A DNA stretch of 54,885 nucleotides from Octopus bimaculoides. Its lineage: Eukaryota. A model generated the notes under the pieces. It was not told the origin of the DNA. It did no database searches and saw only the letters and a list, made by a program, of their open reading frames with translations. The stretch is taken from the NCBI RefSeq assembly GCF_001194135.2, contig NC_068991.1, positions 40,782,461 to 40,837,345 of the forward strand, read 5' to 3'. Positions 10,220 through 43,149 of this stretch are shown piece after piece (the stretch's first letter is position 1; every line of letters starts with the position of its first letter). The translations under genes were made by a program, and so were the position numbers.

Positions 10220-10747
<528 letters not shown>

Positions 10748-21229: not shown

Positions 21230-22160
21230 AAATGGAAGAATACGAGATGCAGTTTCATCATTTGATACTCTTTTCTTCCAGAAAGGAGGAAAATGCTATG
21301 TACAATTTATGGAGATAGTACCATAGCTGAGAGGACTGTTTGTAAGGGTTAGGGTTAGGGTTAACATCATGAAGTTAAGGAGTGAAAATTTTGAACTGGA
21401 AGACCATGAACATCCTGGCATTGATGACAACCAAATTGTAAATGCGTCATAACGCATTTACAACTATTTGGGTACCCAAATTGCTGATATTTGGGTGCCT
21501 CATAATCTAATGGACTGCATTTCCATCTTAGATTCTCTGCTCAAACTCAACAAAAATTAAACATTTTTGAATAGAACAATCGCATGTGATGAAAAATGGA
21601 TTATTTACAACAATGTACAGCAAACAAAGTTCATCAGAAAACAAAATGAACCACCTTTAATCACTCCAGAAGCTGGTAGTATCTGAAGAAGTTGATGCTT
21701 AGTATCAGGAGGCATTGGAAGGGTATTGTGTATTACATGCTCATGCAAATTCAGCTGTTTAATTCAGACAATTATTGTTTCCAATCAGACCAATTAAAGG
21801 ATGCAATTGATGAAAAGCATCCAGAATTGGTCAATCAGAAGGGTGTCGTCTTCATTCAGGACACCACTAGATTTCATGAATCCTTGCAGAACCAGCAGAA
21901 ATTGGTACAGCTTGGTTGGGATGCCCTACCACATCCACTGTATTCACTTGATCTTGCAACTTCAGATTACTATTTATTTCAAACCCTACAAAATTCTCTT
22001 AATGGGAAAGACTTCGATTCTTTGGAAGTTTGTAAAAACCACTTAGAACAGTCCATGATTCAGAAAGATGCCAAGTTTTGAGAGAATGGGATCATAAGGC
22101 TGCCTTAAATATGGCAAAAGGTAATGGAACAAAACGTGACATATGTGGTTGAATAAATGT
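21230..22160 (+). mobile_element. Degenerate mariner (DD34D) transposase
   Basis: IACDEKWIIY, FIQD...HPLYSLDLATSDYYLF; 34 residues counted between the second and third Asp. Confidence 0.88.
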
Positions 22161-22617
22161 ACATATATCTAAATAATGTTTTTGAATTTTACTTAAAAAA
22201 CTTCAGACTCTTGTTCCAAATAAGATTAGATCAAAAAAACTCTGATCACCAAATTGTATTTTTATAGAAGTACAAAATCAGGTCTCATCGTAAAAATGAG
22301 GACAAGTATAGAAATTTAAAACAGCCAAGTATTTGAAATGCATTACAAATGTAAAGGAAATTTAACTAGGAACTAAAATGGGATTGCAGTACTTACACTA
22401 GAGCAACACCATTATTCAAGTGAAATAATGCCACATCAAAAACAGAAATGCAGTAAGATAATCAGGTTTTATCCATGAGAAAACATATGAAAGAAAAACT
22501 TCAACAAAATCGACATTGTTTAACACTTTTAATGATTCATGGTTGATGAAAATAGAGATAACACAATATTCATGTTACTGCATTTTCAGTTGGTAAACTG
22601 AAGGAATAAACATATTT

Positions 22618-22715
22618 TCAAATTGCTGAACATGATTTAGGGTTGGGAACCTCACATTTACATTTGTCCTCCTCTGGAACATCTTTCATCACACTTTCAA
22701 TGTGCTTCCCACAAC
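22618..22715 (-). CDS. 48-aa Cys/His-rich microprotein, coding exon 2 (G-CGKHIESVMKDVPEEDKCKCEVPNPKSCSAI*)
   Basis: Pyrimidine-rich acceptor ttttacatttcag|GT TGT GGG AAG CAC; TGA at 22618-22620; ATTAAA about 85 nt downstream (22528-22533). Joined CDS is 49+98=147 nt = 48 aa + stop. Confidence 0.85.
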
Positions 22716-23709
22716 CTGAAATGTAAAATATATAGAACTTCAACCACCAATTTCTTTTGTTAAAGTACAAGAGATTGATTTTAGGACAAGAGGCATGTAG
22801 CTGAATCAAATAAACTATGTTAATAACAATATTAATAACACTTATTTTATCAACACTTGGGCTAAGAAATGAAAAGGGTTGAAAGATAGGGTACCTCTAC
22901 CTCCTCTTCCTCTCTCTCATCTTCTTGGCCACCCCGTACACAATTCTTAGACACCATACACATATGCACCTTACTTTATGCTATAGTCAATCCTGACCCC
23001 CCCCCCCCCACTCTATCTACCTCACTTTCTATTTCTTTTCTTTTTTTGTTTACTTTCACCAATTAATAGCCACCTCCGCTACCATTCTGTTATTGAACGT
23101 TGATATGTTCGCATCTTTTTCTTGGGATGTCTACTATATCAGGACTTTAACCCACATGGATATACACAGGGTTTCACCTAAAGACTTACACTCATAGATC
23201 TATGCAGCATTGTACCTAAGGACTCATTCTCTGGTGTCTATAACTTCAGAAAGTTGAACTATGAACTTTTATGCTTCTTTGTTCTTCTCGCTTTCCATCT
23301 CATTCTTTTACACCCTTCCTCTATGTTGTCGTCTTATTGATATATACCATTTTCATCCCCCCCTATTTCTCTGTGATGACAGAATATCCCATATCTGGGG
23401 GATATCCCAGAAACAGCTGTATGATTTTGAATTTGTTGTTATAATAATATTGTATATGACTTGAGATGTTTGCCTTGCCTTAATGTTTGACATCCTGTTT
23501 AACAATTATACATCTGTTGCATCGGAAATCTGCAATGGCTCAATAATTACTATCTTGGCTATAACCTTGGAGCCTCAGTAATCCATTAAAGCACTTACCT
23601 AGCATATCTAATCACTGGGAGTTTGGATCACCAGTGAACTAAACCCCCATACATTGTACACATATGTGTGTGTATAAATATATATGTGTGTGTGTGTGTG
23701 TGTATACAT

Positions 23710-23746
<37 letters not shown>

Positions 23747-24039
23747 CATACATGTATTTACATATATATATATATATATATATATACATACATATATTTA
23801 TATATACATATATATATATACATATATATACATACATATACATGTGTATATATACATACATGTATTTATATATACATATATATATNNNNNNNNNNNNNNN
23901 NNNNNNNNNNNNNNNNNNNNNNNNNNNNNNNNNNNNNNNNNNNNNNNNNNNNNNNNNNNNNNNNNNNNNNNNNNNNNNNNNNNNNGCGGACGTTAAACGA
24001 TGATGATGATGATGATGATGATGATATATATTGAAGATT

Positions 24040-24590
24040 GCCTCCCAAGAATTAAAGAAATTCTCATGAAACTGGAACACCACATGAGCATATTTCTTAT
24101 GGGTGATTTCAACTTGCCCAACGTCAAATAGCCTGAAGGTCTCATACTCTCAGGAATGACTCATTGCAAGCAAGCATAGGGAGTCCCTGCTCAACCTCAC
24201 CAATGCCCTATTCATGGAGCAAGCTGTACTCAGATCAACTAGGGTGAAAAACATTCTGGATCTCTGCTTCACAAACAATATGGACATTATTCATGATGTG
24301 AAAGTGACACCGACATTAGTCTCGGATCACAACATAATAGAGCTGTCTATGTTTGGACCGAAAGTAACCAGAGACATACAGCCTAAAGGAAGCACCCAAA
24401 ATCTCTCCAATCTGAATTCCACAAAGCAGACTGGAAATCGATCCAGAAAGAGATCCTCAGGGAGGATTGGCCAAAATGTCTCTCCACACCAGATATTGAC
24501 ATGAAATTAGAATGTTTCATGTCTATTGTGCAAGCGATATGCCAGAAATATGTTCCAGAGCACAAGGCCAAAACAGATAGGAACACGATT
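24040..24590 (+). mobile_element. APE-endonuclease fragment of a CR1/L2/jockey-type LINE
   Basis: MGDFNLP and TRVKNILDLCFTNN...VSDHNIIEL endonuclease motifs. Confidence 0.75.
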
Positions 24591-24649
24591 CCAAGAGAGT
24601 ATTGTAAAGCGTCTCTATGTAGCCCTTTATGAGTAATAAAAAAACAAGT

Positions 24650-27195
24650 ATGATGGCAGCCTTTCTGTTTTTCCACAGTTTGGCCTGGTCTTGGCTTCCT
24701 TAAGTGGATAATGGAATTGTATGAAAACATTGACTCTATCATTCAGGTGAACGGTTTTCTATTGAGACCGTTCTGTATCAAACACTCGGTTCGCCAAGGG
24801 TATCCACTCTCACTGCTTTTATATGTGATGGCTCTTGAGCCATTACTGCGAAGATTGAGTGGCACCCCGAGAGAGTCAGGATGTGGAGAGTTGGTTTCAG
24901 CTTATGCGGATGACATCACCATCAGCGTGACCAAAATGCAACACTTACAGGAGGTAGGCAAGGCCATTGAGGTTTACGAGACGGTGGCAGGAGCAAAGAT
25001 TAACTGGGAAAAATCAGTTGGCTTGCAACTAGGCACCTGGAGGGACAAGTCGATATCTTCAGACAGCATCGTAGGACGTTGGATAGAGGGCCCAGTTAAG
25101 TTGCTAGGGTTCTGGTTTGGTCCAGACCTCCATGTAGAGAAGAACTGGGCTGAGGTTTTGAGCAGGGTGGCTCACATATTCAGAACCTGGTCTTGGTGGT
25201 GACTGTCCTTGAAAGGGAGGGCGGAGGTGGCCAATGTGTTCATCGTATTGGTCATTACCTACCGCCTAACCGTTGTTCTTTGCAGGATTCATGGTGATCA
25301 AGTTGGAAAGACAGCTCTTTCACTTTTTGTGGAAGGGCTTGAAGCCAGTTGTAAAACGTTCTATTTGCTGTCAAAGACTGTTAAAGGGAGGACTAGGGAT
25401 GCCTTGGCTGTGATGCGCAAACACACACTGAGGTTGTAACATCTCTGGATTCTTCTGGATGGTGAACAGGTGTGGTCTCCACTGGCGAAACAGACGTTTC
25501 CCTCATTCGCTAGTTTCAGTCGACAGGAAGCCTGGTGCTTTTGTAGATCTCGGTTGAGTGAATGGCATATGGAATATTGCAAGGCCCTCCTGCTATTCCA
25601 TCGCTCAGATAATGCCAGCGGTGGCAGGTCTACAGCATTTTTCTATAGAGGGTTGGTAGAGGCTGGATGTGATGATACCTGTGGTGGAGACCCTGGGGGA
25701 GACTCTGGGTCTCAGGTATATTCAACTTGACAACCTGTTTTCTCATACATTTGGGTTGAGGACATTAGATAACTTACAAAAGTCCTTGACCTGGCAATGT
25801 TACAGATGTGTCTTACCCGTTTGGGATAAGCTCCCAAGACATGGTCAATGTGACACGCCAACCTGCCCAAGATGTGAGCAGGATAGAGAAACTGTCCTGC
25901 ATGCTTTTGTTCAGTGTCCAGGGGTGTTGGAGATGTGGACTTATGCGGAACATCTGTTGTCTGGTACAGGAAGAATACAGCTATCGACTGAGTCAATTAT
26001 AAAAATTGATCCGCCTAATTTTCTGTCAAATGAAGGTAAGAATTGTTTTCTCATCATAGTAACAATAGCGAAAAAGTGGTATGGAAGACGAGGATGAAGG
26101 AAGGGCGTTCCTTCGATTTAACTTGACAAAACCAAAACAAACATTTGACTGTTTCCGTGACAACTCGACAATTCACTTCGGATATCTTCATGACAATTGC
26201 TGAAATGGAAAGAAGAGAAGAAAGCTAATGGGTTGTGTGTGCATGTTTGTTCTTGTCTGAGTGTGTGTGTGTGCTTGTTCTTGTCTCTGTGTGTGCGTGC
26301 TTGTTCTTGTCTGTGTGTAGACAAGAACAAGCATGCACACACACAGACAAGAACGAGCATGCACACACACAGACAAGAACAAGCATGCACACACACAAAC
26401 AAGAACAAGCACACAAACACTCAGACAAGAACAAACATGCACACACAACCCATTAGCGTTTTTCTCTTCCTCCCATTTTAGCAGCTGTCATGGAGGTTAT
26501 GAAGATATCCGAAGTGAATTGTCGAGTTGTCACGGAAACAGTCGAATGTTTGTTTTGGTTTTGTCAAGTTATATCGAAGGAATGCCGAAAGGAGTAATAA
26601 CAGGCAGCTTCATCTCTAGCCTTGCCTTACAAAGATATTTTACTTTTCACTTGAAAAATAAAAAAGAGCTAGAGAAGAGGTGTCTGTTGGAGAAAATGTT
26701 TAACGAAAGATGGAAATATGTAGCATGAGTGTTGCGAGTGGTTGTAACCATGTGAATATACCATAAAGTGTCTTAACCCTTTTGTTACTGTATTTATTTT
26801 GAGAGGCTCTGTGTTTCTTTCAATTACTTTAAATATAACAAAGGATTTAGTAAAATAACTTAGTTATCATTCAGCTAGTGTTAGGAACGTAAATTGTGAC
26901 TAAGATTTGGTGGAAGATTTTAATTCAAAACTTATGAAACCAAGACATTTGTACTCAGAGCTTGAGCCGGTTTCGGCCAGGTTGGTAATGAAAGGGTTAA
27001 AGGTATCAGTGGTGAATTGGGGCTCATGGGGTCGGAGCTGAAGCCAAACACCACTTCATCTCTGTTGTCATCATTTGTTGCATGTATTATATGTAATTTT
27101 TAACTGCATTTTTATATAAAATTTATTTCATTGTATCTGACCCCTCAGATTGTACCGTCCCCATCTATGTTGGCCCCTAGTGGATAATAAAGAAT
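24650..27195 (+). mobile_element. Tx1/L1-clade non-LTR retrotransposon copy A (RT and Cys-rich C-terminus, degenerate)
   Basis: VRQGYPLSLLLYVMALEPL, SAYADDITI, AKINWEKS and CPRCEQDRETVLHAFVQC. 3' UTR ends ATGTTGGCCCCTAGTGGATAATAAA. Confidence 0.9.
26104..26586. mobile_element. 483-bp foldback MITE inserted in Tx1 copy A
   Basis: The element is almost entirely palindromic (GGCGTTCCTTCGA...TCGAAGGAATGCC) with mirrored ~26-bp internal repeats. Degenerate 8-bp flanks GAAGGAAG/GAAAGGAG. Confidence 0.85.
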
Positions 27196-27200
27196 CAAGT

Positions 27201-30200
27201 ATGATGGCAGCCATTTTTCTAGTTTAGTCATTTTTGACCACAGTGTGACGGAGGAGGATTGTGTTTTTGAGACTCGCTGTTGTTATTACAATTATTATTA
27301 TTGTTGAAGTGACTTACGTGTGTTCGTTATTCACTACTGTTATTGTTTTTGCTGTTTTTCTCCCCGTTGTGAGTGAGAAAAGGCTTAGCTTTTCCTATCA
27401 TGGAAAGCTATGCAAGGATTGCTGCAGCAAAGGCAGCTGCACTGTTGGAAGCAAGGCAGATGGAGGTTGACATGGAGGAGGTTTTGAGAGGTGAACAACT
27501 TAAGCAGAGGGTGGGAGACACTATCTATCCACAGGAGACAGTGAAGGATGGGAGCGACGAGACGGTGGTGTACCGCACACAAGCGGTTGCCATCAGCAGG
27601 ATGGAAAGGTTGTCGGAGGACGATGTTGAAGAGTATCTGGGAGATGTAACAAGGAAGGCTACTTTTATTGGCAGAGGAGGAGGTGCAGCGCAGTGGAGGT
27701 GAGGTTTGCCACCAAAGATGGGGCGGTCTCACATTCCACCACCATTCTGGGTTCAAGCAGGGTAGTGCTGTTGCCCACGTATGGGGGAGGGCACAGCGTT
27801 CGAGTCAGAGTGGCAAGAGTGCTGCCTGAAATCAAGACAGAGTGGTTGGTGGCAGCTGTTCTGGCTGCCACTGAGGACAGTCTAGAACTGGGACTGATGG
27901 GAGAGACAAATACGTTAAACTGGTGGGGATTTGGTGTAGAGATATGGCTTTTTTCCACATTTGGGGACATAGGGCAAGTCCCCTACCAGATTGAGATTGC
28001 AGAGGAAGGTGTGCTGAAGGTTGTTGTAGAGGGACGACAACCCAATTGTTGTATATGTGGAGTGAGGGGTCATGTGAAGATGCAGTGCCCCAGGTTTGAG
28101 CATGCTCAGAGCGAGAAGGTAGGGGAAGGGGAGCAGGAAAAGGAGATGGGAGAGCTGAAACAGGGAAGGAGAGAGCTGAAACAGGGAAGGAGAGAGCTGA
28201 AACAGGGAAGGAGAGAGCTGAAACGGGGAAGGACAGCGGCGATGTTAAGTGTGGCAGTGATGCAAAGGAGAAGGAAGGGATTGAGGTAAGAGGTAGAGAA
28301 AGGGAATGATGGGTTTGTCAGCCCCAAAGGAGGAAGGAAGGCTAGGACAGGAGAGTATTCACAGGGACCAGCAATAGAAGCCAAGAGGAGGCCACAAAGG
28401 GGTGAGGAACAACCTAAACCTGAAAGTATGCAAGCAGTGGGAAGAGAAGCAACAGGGGAAGAGGAATGTAATTGTAAGGGATTCCTGATGGTCTGCGAAA
28501 GGAGTGTGGAGGTGGAGAGAAGAATGGCGGAGTGGAAGGGACTGGTGAGGATGAGGCTGTCCAGAGAGGAGTTTGACGGAGATGATAGAGGAGCTCTGGT
28601 GTGGGACAGGGGATTTTGATGGATTTGTGGATGCATTCGGTGGATTGGTAAGTGTGATGGACAGGATATGGTTGCATGAAACTCCGCCGTCTGTAGTGGA
28701 ATATGAACAGTAGAGGGAAAAAAAAGAGGAAAGACTGTCAAAAAATCATGTATAAATGTAATCATTCAACTCAAGGGGTCAAGTGGGCACTGTGCTTCAT
28801 TTTTATCGTTCTTTCCTAATTTCATTCGTTTCTTTTATTTTTTCTTCTTTACTCAATTTCCTTTTTGCAATTTTTAATTGGGAAAAATTAGTCGGCTAGC
28901 AACTCAGCACCTAGAGAGGCAAGTCGATGCCTTCAGACAGCATCGTAGGACGTTGGATGGAGGGCCAAATTAAGTTGCTAGGGTTCTGGTTTGGTTTGGA
29001 CCTCCAGGTAGAGAAGAACTGGGCTGAGGTTTCGAGCAGGGTAGCTCACATAGTCAGGACCTGATCTTGGCGGTGACTGTCCCTGAAAGGGAAGGCAGAG
29101 GTGGCCAATGTGTTCATCGCATCCATCACTGCCTACCGCCTAACCGTCATTCCTTGCCCAGATTTGAGGTTGATCAGGTTGGAAAGACAGCTCTTTTGCT
29201 TTATGTGGAAGGGCTCGAAGCCAGTTGTAAAACGTTCTATTTGCTGTCAAAGACCGTTAAAGGGACGACTAGGGATGCTCTGGCCATTGAGGAGCAAACA
29301 TGCACTGAGGTTGAGGCATCTCTGGATTCTTCTGGATGGTGAACGGGAAACCTAGTGCTTTTGTAGATCTTGGTTGAGTGAGTGACATATGGAATGTCGC
29401 AAGGTCCTCTTGTTATTCCGTTGCTCGGGTAATTAAATTTTAGTCTATTAGATATAGCATAGGTTTAGTGGCTAGAGAGTGTAAGCGGGAAGAAGATATA
29501 GTTAAGGCCCTATAGGAAGTCATGAGGACTGGCAGTGCATCCCAGGTGAAGATGAAGAGACTGGAACTTAACCAGCACCTCGAAACCAAGCACATTCGCG
29601 CAGTGGGCTGCGAGGGAATCAAGGCTGCTGGATGGGCCCCCGAGAGGTGGAAACCCAATGTGGATATTGATTCCATAGTTTGATCTTTGGTCAACCAACA
29701 AGGTGAATTGATAAACGAACCTGAGGAGATTTGTAAGACCTTTCAGGAGTACTTTGCCCAGCTTAGCTTTTCCAGGGTGGGGGTCGATGGACTGGATAGT
29801 AGGTTGGACCTTACAGACTTCTTTGCTGGGCTGCCACATCTCTCGGTGTAGGATATGGAGTGCTGTGAAGGGTTGATCACACCTGAGGAAGTGATAGAGA
29901 CTATGAAGGATATAGGTAAGGTACCGGGTTTTGATGGTCTGCCTTATGAATTGTATAAGATTCATGTTTGGGCAAGTTGGAGAGACAGATCTTCCACTTC
30001 TTGTGGAAGGCCTCGACTCCACTTGTGAGACTTTCTATCTGCTGTCAAAAACCGTTAAAGGGTGGACTAGGGATGCCTTGGCTGTTGATGTGCAAACATG
30101 CGCTGAGGTTGAGACATCTTTGGCTCCTCTGGATGGTGAATGGGTGTGGTCTCTGCTGGCGAAACGGATGTTTCCCAGGTTCACTAGTTTTGTCGGATGG

Positions 30201-31110
30201 GAAAACTGGTTCCATCGAAGATCGAAGTTGGGTACATGGTACACAGAGTGTTGTAAGGCTCTCCTGCTTTTCTGTCACTCAGGCAATGCCAGTGGTTTTG
30301 GTACAACCGCATACTTTTATAGCAGGTTGGTAGAGTCTGGTTGTGATGATGCCCTAGGGAAGACCCTGGGTCTGGATAATAATCAACTGGACAGTTTGTT
30401 CCAATGGACGTTCGGGCCGAAGACATTGGATAACTTTGGAGCCTTACCCGTTCGGGATAAGCTTACTAGACATGGTCATCCCAGCCCATCAGCCTGTCCA
30501 ACATGCGAGCAGGATAGGGAAACCATCCTGCACTCTATTGTTCAGTGTCCAGAAGTGTCAAAAGTGTGGGCTTATGCAGAACACCTGTTATCTGACACAA
30601 GAAGAGTACAGCTGTCGTCTGAATCAATTATAAAAATTGACCCACCTGATTTTCTAACAAAAGAAGGTAAGAATTGTTTTCTCATGGTAGTAGCAATCGC
30701 GAGAGAGGTGATATGGAAGTCGAGAATGAAAGGAATGGCAACAGGCAATTTCATCTCTGTTCTGGGGCCAGTGAGTTTTTTCACTTTTCACCTGAAAAGG
30801 AAATGCCTGTCAGAGAAATGTTCAAAAATAGATGAAAGTGTGTGGCATGAGTGCTGAGCATGAAAGATACCTCGTGAACATGCCATAGACCTTATCACAA
30901 GTATCGGTGGTGGGACAGGGCTTGTGGAGTTGGAGCATAATCCCATTTCATCACCTCATTTGTTTTGTCTTTTGTTCGTCTATCATTCATTTTACATATT
31001 TTTATATATTTAATTTTTAAATGCATCTCAATGTTTTTTCATCCATTTCCTCTGACCCCGAAGATTAGATTGTATTGTCCCCGCTATGTTGGCCCCTTGT
31101 GGGCAATAAA
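27201..31110 (+). mobile_element. Tx1/L1-clade copy B (ORF1 with CCHC knuckle; rearranged ORF2)
   Basis: ORF1 27373-28289 is frameshifted and contains CCICGVRGHVKMQC. ORF2 pieces include GKVPGFDGLPYELY and CPTCEQDRETILHSIVQC. 3' end matches copy A. Confidence 0.9.
28149..28233 (+). repeat. Four 21-bp tandem units (GAGAGCTGAAACAGGGAAGGA) encoding ELKQGRR in Tx1 ORF1
   Basis: Seen directly. Confidence 0.9.
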
Positions 31111-31445
31111 ATGATGGCAGCCACCAAGGAATACATCATCTTGATGATGGGGACATTACATATATGGAAGTTTTAATTTTTAACCCTGACCGGTAATGTA
31201 CCCCTGAAACGGCCGTAGATGGAACACCCTCCTATTTTTCGGAACCTTTTTATTTACTGTTCTTAACCTTGACATCTTGTGTCACTTTTATCTCATATTT
31301 TAGATGTATTAGAAATTTTAGACAATTTAGGCGGTCTGCCATTTTCATTCCTATATTTATCAACCTCTCATTTGCTTTGTGCCCCCTATATTTATCATGT
31401 ATGACTTTTTACATGTAATCCTTATTGATATGTAATTTTACATGT

Positions 31446-32070
31446 AAAGTTGCAGAAAGTGTATGGAGAGGAGTGCATGAGTTGCAAACAAGTGTATGAA
31501 TGGTTCAGATGTTTCCAAGATGGCCGGAAAATATCGATATTGACAGACATTCTGGGAGACTCGCAACCAGCAGAAGTGAGAAAAACATTGCAGATGTGCA
31601 TGCAGCTGTGAGGGGAAATCGTTGAATCACCATTCGTGAGTTATCAGAGGATGTGCAGATTAGTTACGGTTCAGTTCAGACCATTATCACTGAAGATTTG
31701 GGTATGAACTGTGTATCTGCCAAGTTTGTGCCAAAACTGTTTTCAGATGACCAAAAAGACACTTGGAGTTTAGTTGGACAAGATCTCCTTGATTGTTTTG
31801 AGACCAATGAAAACTGTTTGAAAACTTTGCATAGGCCTCTGAACAGGTTTTGCCAAACTCTTGCCAAAATTTGATGCAGGTTCTCTGGTCAACTTTCTCT
31901 GTCATGGTCAATGTAATGATCATATGTTACACACATTCCTTCCAAGCACTGCTGTAAACGGTGGAAGTGAGCTAGAACGTTAAAACTTAGTGCGCATGCA
32001 CAGCAGAGTTCAATGTCAATTTGTGCCAAGCGGCTTTACACTGCATGCTTTAGCTTCATTACTATGCCAA
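31446..32070. mobile_element. Mariner 5' fragment with internal inversion
   Basis: Minus strand MTEKVDQRTCIKFWQEFGKTCSEAYAK continues as plus-strand LQKVYGEECMSCKQVYEWFR...VSAKFVPKL. Confidence 0.8.
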
Positions 32071-32139
32071 CAGTGTGGATACCTATAGATCAGACCACAT
32101 ATATACACACAGACACACACAGGGTGCGGTGAATAAACT

Positions 32140-32950
32140 ATCATCTAAATTACGCAAAAATGAAAATAACACTGATTTTAACAGATATATTTACCAAAAT
32201 ATATTAAAATATCTTGAAATACTAAAGAGAAATTTATTCAAACTCGCCACAAAATTCAACCATGGCCTCCAGACGACTTCGGAATCTCCTGCAACTTGGA
32301 CAATCTTGTTTAAGTTGGTAAATGTTGCCATAATCCTTGCCTTCAGTTCATCTTTGGTGTTACAAGAAGTTTTTTTGGTCTCTCGCTCAATTGCGCCCCA
32401 CACATAATAATCAAGGGGGTTGCAGTCTGGGGAGTTAGGTGGCCAGATGTTAGGGGTGATGTGGTCGTAGAAATTGTCTGACAGCCATGACTGGGTTCTC
32501 TTGCTTTTGTGGCATGATGCAGAGTCCTGTTGTCAGACACAGGGTCTTCCAGCAGCCACCCTCTTGACTTGGGACAGCACTACCTCCTCCAGGCACTTGA
32601 TGTAGGACTTCATGTTGAGTCTGAGGCTGTGTGGGTAGCATATTGTTGCCATCACCAGTGATCACTGCAAACACCAAGATGTTGGCTGAATGTTTGGGTT
32701 TTATTACTCTCAGCATTGACACTGAAACACTCTGAAATGTTTGTACTGGAGCTTCCGGCACGAATGCCAAGCAGTACAGCATGTCATTTCCAAACTTCTA
32801 GCAGAGTGAATTGCGTAATAGTGCTGTTTTCCGCACAGACAGTGCCCAACTGACCCTACCATACTGTGTAGTTGACAAAAATCAAAAACAATGTGCATGC
32901 ATGAAATTAAAAATATAAAACGGCAACAATTTGCACATCACAGCCCATAT
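32140..32950 (-). mobile_element. maT/ITm DD37D transposon remnant
   Basis: QQDSASCH...WPPNSPDCNPLDYYVWG with 37 residues counted between the Asp residues; imperfect TIRs near 32140 and 32945. Confidence 0.85.
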
Positions 32951-33249
32951 ATATATATATATATATANNNNNNNNNNTGTATTTCTTCTATCTTAATGAA
33001 TAAAAATTCTTCTGATAGAATAAATGGGTTAATAGAAACCAATGTAGCAAAGAACATAAAATAACTGTGGTTTAGTTCCTGTTTTTAAGGCAGGAACTCC
33101 TTGAAATTTTGGGTATTTGAGTATATTTAAGAATTTATATATATATAATGCAGAGGATCTGAGAAGACAGGAAAGAAATGAAGCAAGCATGCTCCATTGG
33201 ATGTGCAATGTAAATGAGCATGAACAACAAAGTACAAATGCATTGAGAA

Positions 33250-33410
33250 AAAAATCTAAGCACAAGAGGAATCAGATGTAGTTGCCAACCACTTAATGTG
33301 GCTGGAGCTTCCAGAAGAGGGAGACCCAGAAAAACATGGTATAAAGTGGTGAAGGCTGATCTTAGGACCTTGAACCTTACAGAAGTGATGACAAAGAATC
33401 TCAAGAAAAC
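33250..33410 (+). mobile_element. RTE C-terminal fragment
   Basis: RRGRPRKTWYKVVKADLRTLNL. Confidence 0.7.
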
Positions 33411-36400
33411 CTCAGTGGAACTGAGTTCTGATGGAGGTGTGTGTGTGTGTATTTGCACAGGTGGGCCCTTCACCCAATTTCCTTCCTCCTCAGGACACCT
33501 TTACCACCCATCATCTCATTAACTGCAGCTTTTCTTTGGTATCACTTATTTTCTTACTACTCAGAACCATTTCATTTGTTAGCCACTCTTCATCCATTAA
33601 TACTGTTCTCTTCACTTACACTCTCATTTACCACTACTCCCACAGAATCAACAATTATCTCTCCTTCCCCACCTCCATATATTTCTCAGCTTCTTCATGC
33701 ACTATGCCTGCCTCTCTCTTCCCCACATACTCCTATAACCTATCCATCACCCTTCTCTCGTCCTTCCCCTGTCTACTGTTTCATCATTACTATTCTGCTG
33801 CTAAGCACTGTCAGTCATCTCCTCTCCCACCTCATTGTTTTCTGGCTCTGCTCAATCACTTCTATCCTCTCATCTAAAATATGAGTAGTCATATAGCTCA
33901 TCTACAGCAAGAAACCTGTTCTGCTCTGGACCCTTTTCTCTTGCCTTTACCACTTATCTCCTCATATGAAATAGCCCCCAGCCTTACTAGTGCTGGTGAC
34001 ATGAAAAAAAAGCACTCAGCACACTCTATATAGTGGTTGGCATTAGCAAAGGCACTCAGCTGTTGAAAGCATGCTAAAGTAGACACTAGAGCACAATACA
34101 GTCTTTAGGTCCATTGGATCCAACCCACACCAACATAGACGTTAAATGATGATGATCATCATCATATATTGTAATCTAAGAGATGTTACATTGATGACCT
34201 TTCCATGTAGATTAAGCATATCAATCAGTACAAAGCAGTCACACTTATATATTTATGCCTCACATACAAAACTTTAAAATTGAAATATAATTAAAATAAT
34301 TTTAGCATTAAAAAAAAGAAAAACATAAGCATCAATTTTGTTTTTCATAGACGAAAAGTATCTATTTTAATTGAACAAATTGGGGAGAATTTTAAAACAC
34401 ATTTTTCTGTGAAGGATAAATATTTGATATTTCAATGTCTGCTTCAATTATGTTGACCTTTCAGTGTTTTTCTACATTTTAATATTTGAGTAACATTAAA
34501 CATTAAGGCAGCGAACTGGTAGAATCATTAGCACATCAGTCAAAATGTTTAACAGCATTTTGTCCATCTTTACATTCTGAATTCAAATTCTGCCAGGGTC
34601 GACTCTGCCGTTTGTCCTTTCAGAGTCAATAAAATAAGTACCAGTTGAGCACTGAGGTCAATGTAATCAACTTAGCCCCACCTCTGAAATGGCTGGTCAT
34701 GTGCCAAAACTTGAAACGAATATTTAAGTAGCGTTTTGAGCATTTAATTGTCAGTTGATGACTTTACCACATTCCATTTAAATATGATTATGCAAGACAT
34801 AAAATGTTATGAACAAAATGTTTAAGCAGGTAAATTCACTTTTATTGAAAGCTTTCTGAAGTTTAATGACAAATGTATCAAAGAATTTTCATAAATGCTG
34901 AAATGTATTCAAACTTGTTTCAGCCTAAATTCCAATTTTTTATTAGTAAATCAGGTCAGATGTAATGTTCAGGGCCTTTGCAAGCCTTCACAGACTGGTG
35001 AGATTGATGAACAGTTAAATCTATGTTACTGTTGTACTGGATTCCTGTTATTCTGAGGTTATTAGCAATAATGTAATCTAAGAGCTATACATTTTAAATA
35101 CTTGTTGATCTAGTACAAACTGGTAGAAATTTAAGCTATTGTAGCTGTCATGGAAACAATAGCATTATCAAAGATAGGGTTTTCATTAGGAACAGTATGG
35201 CCAAACGATTAAGATGTTCACTGTTATTTTCTACAACCTCGGATCAACCATCACCCCATGACTGAAATTGGGTAGATGAAAACTGCATAGAAGCCTGTCA
35301 GTAGATTATACCTGTAATTCAAATGGTACAGCTTCATCGCACACACTATATTATGCTGATTCTACCAGAGAATTAAATTAAGGGTAAATGTGTCAAATAC
35401 TCAGACACTTACACTTTAATTTAGGAACAGGTTACTCGTTTGATCAAACACCTGAATCATTATCAACAAATGGCAGAGACCAACTAATGCACATATAATA
35501 TATATATATATATATACATATATACTAGCATACCTGTGTCATCAAATATGCAGAGTTTTATTAATGATAAAAAATGAGAAAAACCATTAATAAATGTCAG
35601 CAATCTAGTAAATATATGTACATACAAAGAATTGAAGCACTTGAACAATCAGATACGATTGTAACGTCTCGGTTGAAAATATTCGCCCACATAATGTGTG
35701 AATACACACACACACACACACACACCTGTACATTTACATATATATGTACATATAAATACACACACACAGGCCACCACAAAGTATATTAACCTACATTTAT
35801 ATATACATATAAATGCATAGACATATCTCTCTCTCTCTCGTAGAGACACACACACTCATATATACAAATATGCATACATATTTATACTCATATTCATATA
35901 CACCTACAGATGTGCATGGATATACATGTGTGTATGCATGTGTGAGTATATGAATGTGTATGTATGCATGTATGTTTGTTTACATTTTTTCGAAATCAGT
36001 AAAATATGTTATCCTTTACACTTGGAAAAGGAAATAAGGCCTTGGGTAAAAGATGGAAAATGGACTAAAGAAAAAAGAGAAAAATGAAAGTACATAACTA
36101 TATNNNNNNNNNNNNNNNNNNNNNNNNNNNNNNNNNNNNNNNNNNNNNNNNNNNNNNNNNNNNNNNNNNNNNNNNNNNNNNNNNNNNNNNNNNNNNNNNN
36201 NNNNNNNNNNNNNNNNNNNNNNNNNNNNNNNNNNNNNNNNNNNNNNNNNNNNNNNNNNNNNNNNNNNNNNNNNNNNNNNNNNNNNNNNNNNNNNNNNNNN
36301 NNNNNNNNNNNNNNNNNNNNNNNNNNNNNNNNNNNNNNNNNNNNNNNNNNNNNNNNNNNNNNNNNNNNNNNNNNNNNNNNNNNNNNNNNNNNNNNNNNNN

Positions 36401-37699
36401 NNNNNNNNNNNNNNNNNNNNNNNNNNNNNNNNNNNNNNNNNNNNNNNNNNNNNNNNNNNNNNNNNNNNNNNNNNNNNNNNNNNNNNNNNNNNNNNNNNNN
36501 NNNNNNNNNNNNNNNNNNNNNNNNNNNNNNNNNNNNNNNNNNNNNNNNNNNNNNNNNNNNNNNNNNNNNNNNNNNNNNNNNNNNNNNNNNNNNNNNNNNN
36601 NNNNNNNNNNNNNNNNNNNNNNNNNNNNNNNNNNNNNNNNNNNNNNNNNNNNNNNNNNNNNNNNNNNNNNNNNNNNNNNNNNNNNNNNNNNNNNNNNNNN
36701 NNNNNNNNNNNNNNNNNNNNNNNNNNNNNNNNNNNNNNNNNNNNNNNNNNNNNNNNNNNNNNNNNNNATATATATAGCGGTAGTAGCGTCAATTAGACCC
36801 AGAGGTTTCAGGTAATGCTGAATAAGTGCTATGGATAGACTATAGTTGGGCTCCAGGTTCAGTTATTATGCGAATAAGGGGTCCAACGTAGGTCATAGAT
36901 CAGCATGTGTAGTAAATCCATATATATATATATATATATATATTATATAGGTATGTTGGTGCAAACAGGGAAAATAGAACTCAAAATATGAGTATATGTA
37001 TATATTTATTAATATTTAGCAGAAGTAACAGGGTGACTCAAATTTTTGTGCATTATCAACTTCTGCTAAATATTGATAAATATATATTATCATTTACATA
37101 ACATTTATATATGTTATGTGAATGATAATATTTTGAAAACAAAAGTGTTTAATATTTAATTTCATATATATATTTGTGTGTGTGTGAAACTAATAAAGTA
37201 CATACAATTTACGATAAAAATTTTCAGTTTTTTAATAAATCATTAAAATATCATTGTCATTAGAGCAAAATCTTTGAATGTTGTTCGTCTGCTTTAGCAT
37301 CTGTGATTGTCAACCACTCCCAATCTGTTAGTTGTTTTACCCTTCTTTCCGTAGCATGACCAATGGGATATACATTGCGTCTTATTATATGTATGTGTGT
37401 GTGCACATGTATGTGTATATATATATGTGTGTATGTGTGTGTGTGTGTGTGTGTGTAAGTATGTATATGCGTGTGTATGTACATGTGTATATATATGTAT
37501 GTATGTCATTATTCAGTTTATTTCAAGATTTCTTGCCAATAAAGAAAGAGCTGGTTTCTAACCTAGAACCAAGGCTCCTTCATTGGAATTTCAACATCAA
37601 CAACAGGGTATTTTTGTTTGTATGTATGTCTTCTTCTGCATATACTTGCATATCTAGACAACCTCATATATACTTATAAGATAAATTTCTGGAAAGTTT

Positions 37700-37850
37700 T
37701 ACAGATTTTTAGAGTTCCAGTGGTGGCTTGAATCTCTAGACTTCAAATCAGCTTTCTTCTTTCTGGTTTTGAGAAGCCTAATTTCTCAAGATTGGTATTT
37801 AGGCAGTTGTTACATACCCTAGTGCCCCAATAATTACAGGTATAAATACA
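37700..37850 (-). mobile_element. Short RLE-type LINE C-terminal fragment
   Basis: Minus strand reads FIPVIIGALGYVTT..LRKLGF. Confidence 0.6.
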
Positions 37851-39738
37851 TGTGTGTGTGTGTGTGTATGTAAGAATGCATGCATGCATTTTCTTGTTCA
37901 GTAAAAATTTCTTTCAAAATATTTAAACGTGCTGCATGTTCTGCTTATTATGTATTGAGTATGCCAATCACGATGTGAGGCCTATTAGTGATAAACAATG
38001 AAAACTTGCATGATTCTAAATTTAAGGCAATTTCTTTTTAAAAAACAAATACTACTCCTTTTCATTAGTCACATTGTCAATCTCACAAGATGTAACAAAA
38101 TGCAAACTTATACTTTATTTACTGGAAAGAGTTCAGTTATCCAAAAGAAACATTGCATTAAGAATCATAACAACAGAAATATCGATGATGAAGTTTTAAA
38201 TAATAATCCATTTCTTAAACAGCTAAAAAAATTGATTTCTAAGGAAAAGGATGTGAGATTATATGCTGTGCTTTTCTCAAGACAAACTGTTGACAAACAA
38301 AGTCAAATCAGTTAACAACTGTAAATAAAAATCAAGCGATTTAATTGGTAAAATAGATTGATAGTGCTTTCTCCATATAAAACCTATGTGTGGGCCTCAA
38401 TGTGGTTGCTCAACCTGATAAAATAGCAACCAAATCTCCTCCATATTATACCCTGTTCTCTTAAATGAAGGACACATTATATAATGTAATCATCTTAGAT
38501 GCACTATGCTTGATATATGCACGGAGAGTCATGGCTGATGCCTTTCATCAGAATTATTCTGCTTGATCAAAGCAAATAACAAAACAATAAAAATGGTGTC
38601 AAGAATTTGTTAATACTAAATATTTTGATACACCAAAGATTTGACACAACTATTAAAAAGACTCAATTTCTCTAAAAAAAAAAAACAATCATCACCTACC
38701 CTATGTGAAACTAATAAAACATATTTAGAAAAATGAATGTTATTTAGGTTGAGTATTTGCAAAATTAAACACTGTAGTACAGCTGAAAGGGTGTAACCTA
38801 TTAATATTACAAAAATAAATTCAATAAAGTTAATATAAAAGCAATTTTCTTTTTTTAACTCTGAAAATGGAATATTACTCTCTGACTAAAGAACAACCAT
38901 GATTGTTTGGTTTTAGGTTGGCCAGTATTGAACAGATCTATGATTCTAACTATTAACTATCCTACCTTTTCACAAACAATGCATATTGGTGGATGGTAGA
39001 ATTCTGATGATGACAGGGATACAGTTGTTTGATGAGCTAAGTGGGTGAGCATTCCACAGACATGGATATCTTTAAAGTAATTCTCAGGCAGAATAAGTGT
39101 GACACAGGCTTCTACAGTTTCCAACTACTTATATTTATTCACAGATTATAAGCTGACCTGAGGTTAGAAAATGACATTTGCTCAAAATACCATATAGTGG
39201 AATCAAACCTGAGAACTTGTGGTTGTAAAGCAAACCTTTCACATATACTACTCCTACAAACAGTGTATATAGAGCTCTACATCATCCAAATGCATCCTTT
39301 CTTTAAGACAGAGGTTATGATTTGAAAAAGGTTTTGATGTTTTTTCTAGCAAGATGAGCAACCACAAAAAGGCTCTTTCAGCTATTGTGGCTACATTACA
39401 CATGAATGGATCACAAAACAAGAATTTGTTTTTTTACTTACAGCATATTTTGTGTTATTTCTGAAGCAACGGGAAATAATATTTATTTGTTTAATGTATT
39501 AGAAAATTATTACAGATCGACCTTGTTCCCCTTCGAATGATATATTTAACCGATCTACAACAACTTTCTTTAACAAGAAACTAATAAATTAATTATTTCT
39601 TATGTTTTCTGGAGGTAGAATGTTACTTTCATTTGTTCAAGTATCCATGTCTTAATCCATTTCCTGTACAAGACTCAACAAGTGATTAATTAAAATAAAT
39701 TTGTAATTTGCACAAGTATGAGGTTTTAAATGTCATCA

Positions 39739-41232
39739 TTATGGTATCCAGGTGATAACTTCTGTGATCTTTGACTGTCTATGATTTTGAACAGCTATAG
39801 ATTCGCATAAGTCTTCAACAGCATAAAAACTGTCAAAATTTTCACAATTGTTCTCTTCTAAGAATCTTCTTACTGTTGACAGAGCAAGTCCAACATCTGT
39901 TGTAGAGACAGGTAGCATCACATCTTTATCATCCTCATCATTGCTGTCGTTACTATCTGTTGATTTTGCATCATCACTCATGAATGAGGCAACCAGTTCT
40001 TCATATGTTGGGATACTGTAACACTCCAGATCATCATCTTGAGTAACATACTCTTCAAACTGCTCTTTTGTCAACATAGTAGGCGGGACTACCACATCTT
40101 CTTCAGCAGGTGGAGTGTCAACACATGTAAAACCAGCTTTCTGGAAACAACTGACTATTGTAGAAGTCTTCAGATTGTTCCATGATTTTGCAATTAAATG
40201 AATAGCATCCAATAATGTGATTTTCTTGGCATTTGCTTTAATCTCTGGATGACCATCAATGTCAAGAATAAGATTTCTGACCAAGGCACTTCTATATAGT
40301 GATTTCAGAGCTTTTATAATGCCTTGGTTGCATGGTTGTTTTACTTTTATAATTTTTGATGGAAAAAACATCAGTTTGACTTGTTTAAGATTTGTAATTG
40401 CTGGGTGGGCAGTACAACTGTCAACAAGTAATACAATTTTTCTTTTCTTTCGAGTCAGCTCGATGTCAAATTCTCTCAGCCATGTAGTAAATATCTCTAA
40501 GGTCATCAAAGCATTTTTACTGTGTTTGTAGGTTACTGGGAGTGTTTTCCCATTGAGGCTTCTGGGGTCTTTATTTTTGCCAATCACTAATAATTTTCTT
40601 TTGTCATTTCCTGACATATTGGATGCCCCCATAATTGTAACTCTATCTTTGTAATTTTTGGTTCTGCTCTTTGTCTCTGACTTGAGGGTAAGCGTAAAGT
40701 CTGGAAGGGCTCTGTACAACAATCCAGTTTCACCTGCAATGTAGATGTCATCAGGATTGTAAGTCTGTAGAATCTCAGGTAATACTGTACGTGTCCAGTT
40801 ATCAACTGCATCTTTCTTCTCACAATTAAGCTTTTTGAATCTGATGTTATGTCTTACTTTCCATCGAGATAACCATCCACTTGTAGGATTGAACTCTGCT
40901 CTGTTTAGATGCTCTGCTAAATCTTTGGCCTTTTCCGACAGAATAGGTCCTGATAAAGGAATGCCTCTGGACTTGGCATTGTTGAACCATTGAGATAATG
41001 CCCCCTCTACATCAGCATCTTTTCCAGATCGTTGCCTTTTTCTCTTTGGATTGGCATTAGATCGATAGTTTGCTATAATTTCTTCTTTCTTTGAGGTCAG
41101 TCTGGATATCTGGGATTGTGAACATCCCAGTTTCTTTGCCACTTCTGTCTGGGACATCTTCTGCCCCAGCAGAATAACTGCTTCATACTGGTCAGCAATT
41201 GACAGATCGTTTCTTTTCCTCTTGGTTGTCAT
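39739..41232 (-). CDS. Tigger/pogo transposase-derived protein (TIGD/CENP-B-like: HTH-psq, HTH CENP-B, DDE_1), 497 aa, probably domesticated
   Basis: Uninterrupted ORF with Tigger motifs (LSIADQYEAV, GIPLSGPILSEKA, GWLSRWKVRH, IYIAGETGL, RKIVLLVDSCTAH, QPCNQGII, ITLLDAIHLIAKSW, TIVSCFQKAGF). No TIRs seen; AATAAA at 39482-39487. Confidence 0.88.
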   Translation of the reverse strand: MTTKRKRNDLSIADQYEAVILLGQKMSQTEVAKKLGCSQSQISRLTSKKEEIIANYRSNANPKRKRQRSGKDADVEGALSQWFNNAKSRGIPLSGPILSEKAKDLAEHLNRAEFNPTSGWLSRWKVRHNIRFKKLNCEKKDAVDNWTRTVLPEILQTYNPDDIYIAGETGLLYRALPDFTLTLKSETKSRTKNYKDRVTIMGASNMSGNDKRKLLVIGKNKDPRSLNGKTLPVTYKHSKNALMTLEIFTTWLREFDIELTRKKRKIVLLVDSCTAHPAITNLKQVKLMFFPSKIIKVKQPCNQGIIKALKSLYRSALVRNLILDIDGHPEIKANAKKITLLDAIHLIAKSWNNLKTSTIVSCFQKAGFTCVDTPPAEEDVVVPPTMLTKEQFEEYVTQDDDLECYSIPTYEELVASFMSDDAKSTDSNDSNDEDDKDVMLPVSTTDVGLALSTVRRFLEENNCENFDSFYAVEDLCESIAVQNHRQSKITEVITWIP

Positions 41233-42253
41233 TTTTTCCCCCTGTCTTCTCTAAACCACTCACTTGAATAAATATAATTTGAATATCGATTTATAAGACC
41301 CAGAAGGCGACAGTTTACTCCAAGCTTGGTATGGTCAAGTCCATTACTTCTTGAAGCAAATGTACATCTAATTTATCTTCCACCCGATAGAAGCTATTTC
41401 GTTATCAATACATATCATCTGTTGGCTTGAAGATCATTTGAATTATCAACTGAGGTTTTGCTATGTCCCATTCATATTTTCCAGTTACCCAGACTTAACG
41501 AGATCCATAGGCCCATCCATAAGCCCCAACATCGACTTTCATATACTTTGAAATAAAGATAACTTGAGTTACGCGGATTAAGAAAATTCAGTTGCCTCAA
41601 TCGCAGGTTCACGAAATAGATAATGAAAACAACAAAAAACGTCCATTCACCGCTTTGATTCAAAACTACTGCTTTACAAATTTTATCAACAACAAAGATT
41701 TTTTGAAGAATTTGATTACGCAGCGAAACCAAAGACAAAATATATAAGGAATCTGAACTTCAACAGTCTTTAAATGTTTTGATATTGCAAGATTAACTTC
41801 GATATACTTCTTTCTGTTTACATCGGTTGGTTGTAAACATGATGGTTTGACTATTGTCAGTTTAATTCATCATGAAACAAGCTTCCACAGTCATTTTATT
41901 CATAGAAAATCAAATAAATAGTTATTTTTATGCTACATTTTGTTTTGTGTTACTTAAAAATCCGAATAAATCTTATGCAATTAATCGGAATTAATTCCGA
42001 TAAAATGGCCCTACGTTTCTTTTAACGACTCGAATTTCAAACACAAAAATGTACTTGCAATTTTGATTAATCGTGCTTCGATGAGGTTCAGAGTAATACA
42101 AAAATAATTAATGGTTAAGCTAGATAAACTAATTTTTTTTTTCTTAATGTCTGCATTACAAATAAAAAAAAAAATACAACATCCTATATGGAGAAATTAC
42201 ATTCTGACAGAAAGTTTTGTATTTGGAAATAAATTATAGAAACTTTCTCTCAC

Positions 42254-42302
42254 CAATCCACGTTGTCTTTCCACAGGTATCACAAGTCGCTTTCTTACAC
42301 AT
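42254..42302 (-). CDS. 48-aa Cys/His-rich microprotein, coding exon 1 (MCKKATCDTCGKTTWI-G)
   Basis: Read manually on the minus strand: ATG TGT AAG AAA GCG ACT TGT GAT ACC TGT GGA AAG ACA ACG TGG ATT G|gtgaga. The phase-1 donor matches the phase-1 acceptor at 22715. Confidence 0.85.
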
Positions 42303-43149
42303 TATGAAAATTTTCGTGTTTTGTTTCTTCCAAGATCCAGAATATTATATTTATAAGTGTCAAAAGTCTCAACTTCTCCCTTAGCAACTCAAAAGCCTCC
42401 GAATTCTGTAGGAACGGACTTGAAACCGCAGTGGGCATATTTTTCTACGTTAAAAGAAATAGTTTCACCTATCGGCCTCCTTATAAAGGAATGTTTCGTA
42501 ATTATGTTAAGAAAATTAATTGCTTTTCGTTAATTTCTACACAAATTATAAATATTGTTTCATTTACTTTTGTAAATTTTCGAAGTAATTAAACACTATA
42601 AGAAAAAAAATTGTAATACATTAAAAATAGTTTCAGTTATCGTTCTCCTTGCAACTGAATGCTTCATAATTATATTATGGAATCTTTTTTTCATAAATTT
42701 CTGGATAAATTATAAATATTAATTCGTTTATTTATGTAAATTAAACACCTTAGGCAAAAAAATAAACTAAATTAATCTGTTTGCAAGCAGTATAACGAAC
42801 TGTGTAAAAGGATTATGGCGTAGTAATACGTAATCTCAGCCAGAAGGATAGGGTGGAGACCATTGTCTTAAACAATATGACTATAATATATAAGAATGTT
42901 TATTAAAGAGCTTCAACTAAAATAATAACAGTGAATAACAATTTCTCATAATAGCACAACTTCAGAGTGTGGTATGAATAAAGGTTATAGATCTTGTAAA
43001 TACAGCATTTCATTTCTAGACAACTACTTTTTCCTGTATTTCTTTTGTTTTTTTTTCACGACAGAACGAACTTGTTATTTCTTTTCTCGTTAAATATTTA
43101 TACGGCATTCGTAAATACACTATAACGTCTGTCCGTTTGGGTTGTGGAT

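Follow-up and report, generated by a model that had tools for sequence, protein, structure and literature searches.

A gene split by a long intron in Octopus bimaculoides for a Cys/His-rich microprotein of an uncharacterized family

Does the genome of Octopus bimaculoides contain a gene of only 147 coding nucleotides that is interrupted by an intron of about 19.5 kb, and what might be the role of its 48-residue product? This question is raised by a stretch of 54,885 nucleotides, to which we refer in its entirety as the window and whose positions are used throughout. An earlier note on this DNA had proposed two minus-strand coding exons at 42302-42254 and 22715-22618, bordered by a GTGAGA donor and a TTTCAG acceptor, which join in phase to encode 48 amino acids. 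All of these elements are present, and the observation of a two-exon gene is confirmed. Our comparisons further provide good support for the gene model and for the assignment of its product to a widespread family of microproteins with conserved Cys and His residues, and they point to a probable, though still conditional, account of what this protein may do.

Read on the minus strand, the coding part of the first exon, ATGTGTAAGAAAGCGACTTGTGATACCTGTGGAAAGACAACGTGGATTG, is directly followed by GTGAGA, with the boundary located at ATTG/GTGAGA (the slash marking the end of the exon), whereas the second exon opens with GTTGTGGG and closes with a TGA stop codon at 22620-22618. Combined, both segments amount to 48 codons and a stop, which are joined in phase 1 within the codon of Gly 17 (G/GT) and which encode the product MCKKATCDTCGKTTWIGCGKHIESVMKDVPEEDKCKCEVPNPKSCSAI. 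Its start codon is the first ATG downstream of a TATA-like box and carries an A at position -3, and if exon 1 were left unspliced, its reading frame would terminate in the intron after 22 codons. The relationship between the two segments is underlined by their homology to the same family of proteins, which spans the junction. When a hidden Markov model (HMM) constructed from 140 family hits was compared to the full set of 3490 six-frame segments from the window, it matched just two, namely those containing exon 2 (E=2.4e-12, profile positions 16-38) and exon 1 (E=1.3e-6, positions 1-17), with the third-ranking segment reaching only E=0.64, and the same search in six frames has not revealed any further family-like segment in the readable part of the intron. 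The spliced product obtains a score of 74.9 bits. Both halves share the same strand, follow each other in the right order and abut at a single codon with consensus-like donor and acceptor, and nothing is disrupted in the start codon, the two splice sites, the stop codon or the nine residues that the family keeps invariant or nearly so.

The family itself was defined in an exhaustive phmmer search of the 48-residue query against 1.84 billion cluster representatives, which at a cut-off of E<=1e-3 identified 785 representatives with a best value of 2e-11, and a subsequent profile search extended to 4965 clusters at 90% identity. Its members, nearly all of which contain between 40 and 110 residues, open with the pattern MC-x4-C-x2-C-x-K-x-[TS]-[WYF]-x-GCG-x-H-[VI]-x13-C-x-C, and the alignments cover residues 1 to about 38 of the query without a gap across the junction at residues 16/17. 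The presence of homologues with a TWxGCGxH-type motif had been named beforehand as a test of the proposal, and it is in the form [WY]-x-GCG-x-H that this motif is found in the 785 representatives. The protein encoded in the window contains every invariant column (M1, C2, C7, C10, G17, C18, G19, H21, C35 and C37) and, with its domain at the N-terminal residues 1-38 of a 48-residue chain, fits the general layout of the family, where the domain forms the very N-terminus of proteins with about 40-110 residues. Its best match is a fungal protein with 73% identity and, within the core, identities amount to 62-64% for fungal, 60% for rotifer and 52% for actinobacterial sequences.

The distribution of these relatives agrees with the description in the earlier note of a small-protein family in fungi, protists, actinobacteria and some invertebrates. 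Named fungal members originate from Agaricomycetes (Stereum, Mycena, Paxillus, Schizophyllum, Phellopilus and Mucidula) and Ascomycota (Fusarium and Tricharina), as illustrated by the proteins from Stereum hirsutum (XP_007300266.1), Fusarium oxysporum (KAK2679415.1) and Schizophyllum commune (XP_050197475.1). The only other named animal member that was found belongs to the bdelloid rotifer Adineta ricciae (A0A814CDG6), and further relatives are encoded in many Actinomycetota and on AT-rich contigs of protist-like character. A scan of a bacterial genome collection returned at least 600 matching stretches, and 590 of the matches listed encode a relative. The description of the family as unnamed has also proven apt: all source names read either hypothetical or uncharacterized, scans of the query and 20 relatives against Pfam-A and NCBIfam yielded sub-threshold noise and no model, and a full-text literature search with motif strings and sample accessions returned nothing relevant.

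Some of these members are found in settings that deserve mention in their own right. One protein that is 64% identical to the window protein (P0005) is encoded on phage-like contigs (L103, 5001-5162; L104; L105) together with more than 20 co-oriented small open reading frames (ORFs), a 5'-3' exonuclease and a NUDIX gene, and a scan of IMG/VR for relatives of P0005 has not identified a close one. A very AT-rich contig of 2 kb (L018) encodes a 49-residue member ending in CKII (1621-1770) and terminates in (GGGGATT)n (2005-2044), an end that resembles the telomere of a gene-sized chromosome, which we presume to be possibly of ciliate origin. In Adineta ricciae (L101 and L102, 161-1842) the intronless family gene divergently adjoins a gene for a DHHC palmitoyltransferase, a single case that may be a coincidence. 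Finally, in RefSeq and PLSDB plasmids of Rhodococcus, Clavibacter, Curtobacterium and Arthrobacter (including L114 and L115, 4001-4162), the ORF of the family identified by tblastn is not accompanied by an annotated coding sequence (CDS), which may indicate that bacterial genomes, too, are poorly annotated for the family, with the reservation that the gene table of PLSDB is incomplete.

A further argument for the two-exon structure is provided by the introns of relatives. In the member P0111, encoded on L099, a short eukaryotic contig rich in AT, the gene call runs through an intron of 60 nucleotides (GTTATAT...ATTTAG), which lies within the corresponding Gly codon and, as in the window, in phase 1 (TGG GCA G/gt...ag/GA TGT GGT), and its removal leads to a protein of 49 residues that ends in CVLL. 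The ascomycete members carry an intron elsewhere, after Cys 10, and no intron was found in the rotifer member or in two AT-rich protist-like members.

The most conserved features of the family concern its Cys and His residues. The earlier note had assigned six cysteines and His 21 as probable metal ligands, and all seven positions (C2, C7, C10, C18, H21, C35 and C37) have turned out to be invariant or nearly so: aligning 84 and 115 sequences revealed no variation at C2, C7, C10, G17, C18, G19 or H21 and a conservation of 90% or more at C35 and C37. The last C-x-C gives way to C-x-G-H in 25 of 296 members, with His 38 taking the place of Cys 37, and since an exchange of Cys to His is typical of metal ligands, this behavior argues for coordination of a metal rather than for a disulfide. 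Models obtained with AlphaFold2 contain the same core of a hairpin and a helix in the window protein and in a bacterial relative (P0300), where strands at residues 3-6 and 13-16 flank the C7-x2-C10 loop and a helix at 22-26 immediately follows C18-G-x-H21. As judged from this model, we infer that C7, C10, C18 and H21 may resemble a site composed of a zinc knuckle and a helix N-terminus, leaving C2, C35 and C37 for a second or shared site. It is thus most likely that the seven conserved residues bind metal, our best guess being one or two Zn(II) ions, with Cu(I) or Fe as possible alternatives.

Outside of the core, the family diverges in its C-terminal elements, which appear to hold information on localization. 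The window protein contains a Cys exactly four residues from its end, where CSAI is followed by the stop codon. This placement recurs in other eukaryotes. Clustering at 50% leaves 127 independent representatives with a tail of at least four residues, of which seven have a Cys at position -4 (CVTG, CQIN, CTVN, CIIS, CVLL, CVNQ and CTIL), compared to 1.4 expected from a Cys frequency of 1.1% in the tails (binomial P=6e-4), whereas positions -1 to -3 and -5 to -8 hold only between zero and two Cys residues each. Within a cluster of 17 listed members (48-67 residues, nearly all 48-50), an intact C-a-a-X is mostly kept despite sequence drift, with the ends CQII, CIII, CQLI, CRII, CKII, CKIL, CIIV and CEII, although one longer member continues past the box, and Ile is the most common residue at the X position. 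Two Schizophyllum species both retain CVVG, and a metagenomic member of 46 residues ends in CQIL. With its 48 residues, short tail and terminal Ile, the window protein fits this subgroup.

Tails differ between groups, with YPPK found in ascomycetes, none in most agaricomycetes and FLxRLFG in bacteria. In the latter, 73 of 117 tails end in [FLWIM][FLIM]x[RK][LIF][FLI], compared to 0.05 expected in shuffled tails, as exemplified by GFLSRLFGR and GFFSKLFG, which follow a low-complexity linker. The membrane-targeting sequence of E. coli MinD is KGFLKRLFGG (PMC5471200), and the bacterial tail thus resembles a MinD-like amphipathic membrane-targeting element. Because two unrelated C-terminal targeting devices would sit on the same core, membrane association is a reasonable theme for the family, which in turn raises our belief in the reading of CSAI as a CaaX box. 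Comparison with relatives supports Cys 45 of the window protein as a candidate for prenylation.

An indication of the process in which such proteins may participate comes from the genomic context of the actinobacterial relatives. In five contexts annotated with Pfam, a regulator of the CsoR/RcnR family (PF02583) directly adjoins the gene in three, a fusion of coenzyme A (CoA)-disulfide reductase and rhodanese (CoADR-rhodanese) in two, in one of them with an overlap of 4 nucleotides, and in a fourth context rhodanese and thioredoxin genes are found nearby. In a survey of 80 species-representative actinobacterial loci, 51 have a CsoR-family gene no further than 4 kb away and 33 have one at a distance of at most 300 bp, while 21 have a full-length CoADR-rhodanese within 4 kb, and rhodanese and thioredoxin genes occur in about 20 loci each. 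In 52 of the 54 neighboring regulators, the His that serves as copper ligand is replaced by Ala, Gly, Ser, Thr or Asn, which defines them as x-C-x-C type and led us to reject control by a copper-sensing CsoR, and the two cysteines are spaced by 29 positions as in CsoR and CstR. Regulators of the x-C-x-C type, among them an actinomycete cluster with 3175 members, are candidate sensors of persulfides (PMC8643695), and a member of this group from Streptomyces coelicolor senses sulfane sulfur (PMC7533328). Upstream of the start codon, at a distance of 34-113 nucleotides, 45 of 79 loci contain a TACC-N6-GGTA palindrome, mostly in the form TACCCCnnGGGGTA, with a background of 0.03 per 200 bp. The motif is similar to the reported ScCsoR site ATACC-N6-GGTAT. 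The palindrome TACCCCnnGGGGTA is also present in ten loci where no CsoR-family gene is found within 4 kb, implying that a distant CstR-type repressor might act on them in trans.

The same neighborhood is found on plasmids. In RefSeq, Curtobacterium pC1a contains a gene annotated as metal-sensitive transcriptional regulator, the family ORF, rhodanese, DsrE and TauE, followed at some distance by trxA, which is encoded on the opposite strand, and a metallo-beta-lactamase (MBL)-fold hydrolase, and in Rhodococcus erythropolis pREL1 the family ORF is placed among genes for thioredoxin-domain, DUF302, DUF2892, TauE and rhodanese proteins; in both records it is devoid of an annotated CDS. The combination of an x-C-x-C repressor, an operator and sulfur-transfer genes that characterizes a CstR regulon is found for the actinobacterial homologues only and does not extend to the eukaryotic gene in the window. 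Within Actinomycetota, this gene context identifies the family as a probable part of a CstR-type response to sulfide or reactive sulfur species.

These observations can be combined in an explanation that, as a whole, we regard as probable. The window would contain a genuine unannotated two-exon gene, whose product folds into a compact domain at residues 1-38 consisting of a beta-hairpin with the C7-x2-C10 knuckle, a GCG-x-H turn from which a short helix begins, and C35-x-C37. Residues 39-48 would be disordered and end in CSAI, a putative CaaX box of the geranylgeranyl type in light of its terminal Ile, that could tether the domain to a membrane. In the actinobacterial homologues the same core would be followed by a linker and a MinD-like tail, with the gene embedded in CstR-type regulons next to rhodanese, DsrE, TauE, thioredoxin and CoADR-rhodanese genes. 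The family would in this way most likely constitute a membrane-associated metal-thiolate module in the homeostasis of sulfide and reactive sulfur or of thiol redox state, where it could serve as persulfide-reactive switch, sulfur acceptor or metal buffer. For the animal protein, a role in sulfur metabolism is an extrapolation that relies on the shared core. More far-reaching, and in our judgment rather unlikely, is the idea of an ancient module, conserved from bacteria to animals, in which a membrane-tethered metal-thiolate core would sense, carry or buffer sulfane sulfur or metals displaced by sulfide, equipped with an amphipathic helix and CstR control in bacteria and with a prenyl anchor in eukaryotes.

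Several findings weigh against parts of this explanation. The link to sulfur stems from Actinomycetota only, and eukaryotes contain no CstR. The predicted fold of the window protein is of moderate confidence, with a predicted local distance difference test (pLDDT) value of 76 overall, about 84 for residues 1-30 and below 50 for the last six residues (43-48), which include the CaaX box; a Foldseek search against the PDB remained without significant match (best E=5, template modelling score <=0.31), with the weak hits, all at E>=5, being mostly zinc-binding modules, and neither sequence nor profile searches found a match in the PDB. The bacterial tail of P0300 is not helical in isolation in its AlphaFold model. 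Most members of the family, including many from fungi, end without a CaaX box and, in CSAI, Ser occupies the a1 position and the small, non-canonical Ala, instead of Ile, Val or Leu, the a2 position. No orthologue from cephalopods or molluscs was found in protein collections holding 15 billion proteins. The gene is followed in the window by SLC35E3, and the first exon of the latter identified Logan genomic contigs (SRR11869384/5) of a species with 86% nucleotide identity, which were too short, and a 20-kb contig piece of a more distant species, where the 10 kb preceding SLC35E3 do not contain a family exon. Finally, the two exons reside on different contigs of the scaffold and their physical linkage therefore depends on scaffolding.

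Among the alternatives, the one that survives best accepts a real metal-binding protein but considers CSAI as coincidental, resulting in a soluble, unprenylated protein, a reading that is doubtful in our view but by no means negligible. It is in line with the absence of a Cys at position -4 from most relatives, the atypical Ser-Ala pair at a1 and a2 and a tail sequence that is not conserved across the family. It would not readily account for the enrichment of Cys at exactly this position in independent eukaryotic lineages and its retention through drift inside two clusters, nor for the fact that those members whose architecture is closest (46-50 residues with a short tail) end in CQII, CIII, CKII, CVLL or CQIL with either Ile or Leu at the X position as in CSAI, and the different targeting-like motif of bacterial members also suggests a membrane theme. 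Of the claim of a CaaX box in the earlier note, the recurrence of the Cys above chance in eukaryotic members has upheld one part, whereas the box is not a family-wide property and its Ala at a2 is atypical.

Less probable than a soluble protein, and on balance improbable, is a dead or silent relic, or a wrong scaffold join, whose exons would never be spliced together. The suspicion arises from the location of the exons on different contigs with three gaps in between, from a long intron laden with transposable elements, including an intact transposase ORF in sense orientation, and from collections that hold no annotated orthologue. The window contains five runs of N, three of them between the exons (23886-23985, 32968-32977 and 36104-36767), and none touches an exon. 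As all three are intronic, the reading frame is unaffected by their unknown lengths, which make the length of the intron only an estimate. Each gap adjoins a (TA)n or (TA/CA)n microsatellite, and simple repeats of this kind are the usual cause of breaks in short-read assemblies, so that these gaps appear as typical local interruptions. Linkage is supported also by the gene halves themselves, which are single-copy and placed in the right order and orientation, strand and phase, and the intact start, splice sites, stop and nine conserved residues speak against a relic. The absence from annotations carries limited weight since tiny split genes are routinely missed, and even the unsplit bacterial ones are not annotated in many RefSeq plasmids.

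Both exons are found on contigs bearing long interspersed nuclear elements (LINEs) and pogo elements of animals, and because these elements and SLC35E3, whose best named match is from Mytilus edulis (57%), surround them, the exons can be assigned to genuine animal DNA rather than to contamination. The pogo/Tc5-type ORF inside the intron, which was looked up and is not on record, is a passenger that takes no part in the product of the microprotein gene, and as an intact element it may have been recently active. Two further ORFs, at 8410-8826 on the plus strand and 51567-51929 on the minus strand, share about 50 residues (..CRVFS.TA.FQRSRS.VIASVR.NV..) and resemble inverted copies of an unidentified interspersed repeat. 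The features of the window are summarized in Table 1.

Table 1. Features of the microprotein gene and its surroundings, in positions of the 54,885-nt window
Feature	Position	Strand	Remarks
TATA-like box TATAAATA	42348-42355	-	starts 53 nt upstream of ATG, no ATG between; weak evidence in AT-rich DNA (35% G+C)
Exon 1, coding part	42254-42302	-	ATG and 16 1/3 codons (MCKKATCDTCGKTTWI-G); carries Cys2, Cys7, Cys10
Splice donor GTGAGA (G/GTGAGA)	42248-42253	-	phase 1, Gly17 codon
Intron	22716-42253	-	about 19.5 kb (estimate); three assembly gaps and transposable elements
Pyrimidine-rich tract and acceptor TTTCAG	22716-22735	-	15 of 20 bases pyrimidine
Exon 2, coding part	22618-22715	-	GT, 31 codons (GCGKHIESVMKDVPEEDKCKCEVPNPKSCSAI) and TGA; carries Cys18, His21, Cys35, Cys37
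CSAI codons	22621-22632	-	C-terminal; candidate CaaX box, Cys45
ATTAAA, possible polyadenylation signal	22528-22533	-	85 nt past stop; weak evidence in DNA of 35% G+C
Pogo/Tc5-type transposase ORF, 497 residues, intact	39739-41232	-	DDE_1 (1e-40), HTH_Tnp_Tc5, CENP-B_N; inside intron, sense orientation
LINE-type reverse-transcriptase fragments	24711-30857	+	24711-25202 RVT_1; 25669-26097 and 29931-30857 zf-RVT; inside intron
Mariner fragment	21692-22081	+	about 0.5 kb beyond microprotein stop
Long-terminal-repeat retrotransposon pieces	46293-48885	-	gag-like DUF7041, reverse-transcriptase RNase H; upstream of microprotein gene
Integrase fragment	13958-14497	+	
SLC35E3-type nucleotide-sugar transporter, first coding exon	about 10340-10729	-	11.9 kb downstream of microprotein stop, same strand

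Very improbable is a third alternative, which regards the Cys-rich domain as a secreted peptide knotted by disulfides or as a metal sponge of the metallothionein type that is devoid of a folded metal site. A small protein with seven Cys in 48 residues might invite this comparison, and CsoR-family regulons of mycobacteria include the copper metallothionein MymT. Yet, the protein does not contain a signal peptide, its conserved domain starts with Met1-Cys2 and the bacterial members have the appearance of cytoplasmic proteins. The fixed ligand pattern with its invariant His, Gly-Cys-Gly and aromatic residue, the swap of Cys to His at the last position and the defined fold predicted by AlphaFold would be difficult to reconcile with a sponge, the Pfam scans of query and relatives found no metallothionein match, and the regulators that neighbor the bacterial genes do not carry the copper-ligand His. 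The last alternative, an accidental ORF or contamination of the assembly with DNA from fungi or bacteria, whose probability is minute, might appeal to the fungal origin of the closest matches and the ease with which spliced ORFs of 48 codons arise by chance, but it is already contradicted by the data, that is the profile matches of each exon at E-values of 1e-6 and 2e-12 with nothing comparable elsewhere in the window, the LINE and pogo elements in the intron that separates them, the animal SLC35E3 gene that follows on the same strand and the fungal members, which are here either intronless or carry their intron elsewhere.

With a probably genuine, membrane-tethered member of the family as the favored explanation, the locus illustrates how a gene of 147 nucleotides, with some 19.5 kb of intron between its halves, escapes ORF tracks and standard gene finders, and how a conserved family with thousands of members can remain outside Pfam and NCBIfam. 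The earlier note had left the function of the protein open, and the gene context in bacteria now points to homeostasis of sulfide and persulfides. This CstR-type context, together with the differing C-terminal elements of bacterial and eukaryotic members, provides a first functional handle on the family. If the animal protein were indeed prenylated and metal-bound, it would be a new small player in membrane-associated thiol and sulfide biology, and if the core were an ancient module, the gene in the window would be an unannotated component of the handling of H2S and persulfides in animals.

The relationship to known systems differs for the individual parts of the protein. In bacteria, the homologues are co-located and apparently co-regulated with the components of cst-type operons under control of CstR, which encode rhodanese, TusA/DsrE, persulfide dioxygenase, CoA persulfide reductase and TauE. 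The family shows no relation in sequence or fold to rhodanese, TusA or DsrE, and its seven conserved Cys and His residues contrast with the single catalytic Cys of these proteins. The studies consulted on such regulators (PMC8643695, PMC7533328) do not mention the family, and since such a regulon is absent from eukaryotes, the window protein is linked to it through homology of the core only. With zinc-ribbon, zinc-knuckle and rubredoxin-like sites, the modeled core shares a CxxC knuckle on a beta-hairpin and ligands at the start of a helix, but it differs from zinc ribbons, treble clefs and rubredoxin-like proteins by the absence of a significant match in fold or sequence and by its seven instead of four putative ligands, pointing to a second site or a binuclear center. 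MymT, from the RicR/CsoR regulon, is likewise a small Cys/His-rich protein under control of a CsoR-family repressor, although without detectable sequence similarity, and the family described here is distinguished by neighboring regulators of the non-copper x-C-x-C type and by a predicted fixed fold instead of a Cys-cluster sponge.

At the C-terminus, the likeness is confined to tails. Those of bacterial members are a near-literal match to the membrane-targeting sequence of MinD at the same C-terminal position, whereas the domains are not homologous, and the window protein and several eukaryotic relatives end in C-a-a-X as do prenylated small proteins such as Ras and Rho, with their tails, or G-gamma. 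The closest known system is the unnamed family itself, with which the window protein shares the N-terminal core of 38 residues including all invariant positions, the small size and an identity of 60-73% to eukaryotic members, and from which it is set apart by its intron and its short CaaX-type end. It is here the first member from a mollusc-like animal genome and, as such, a split, CaaX-ended form of an existing uncharacterized family.

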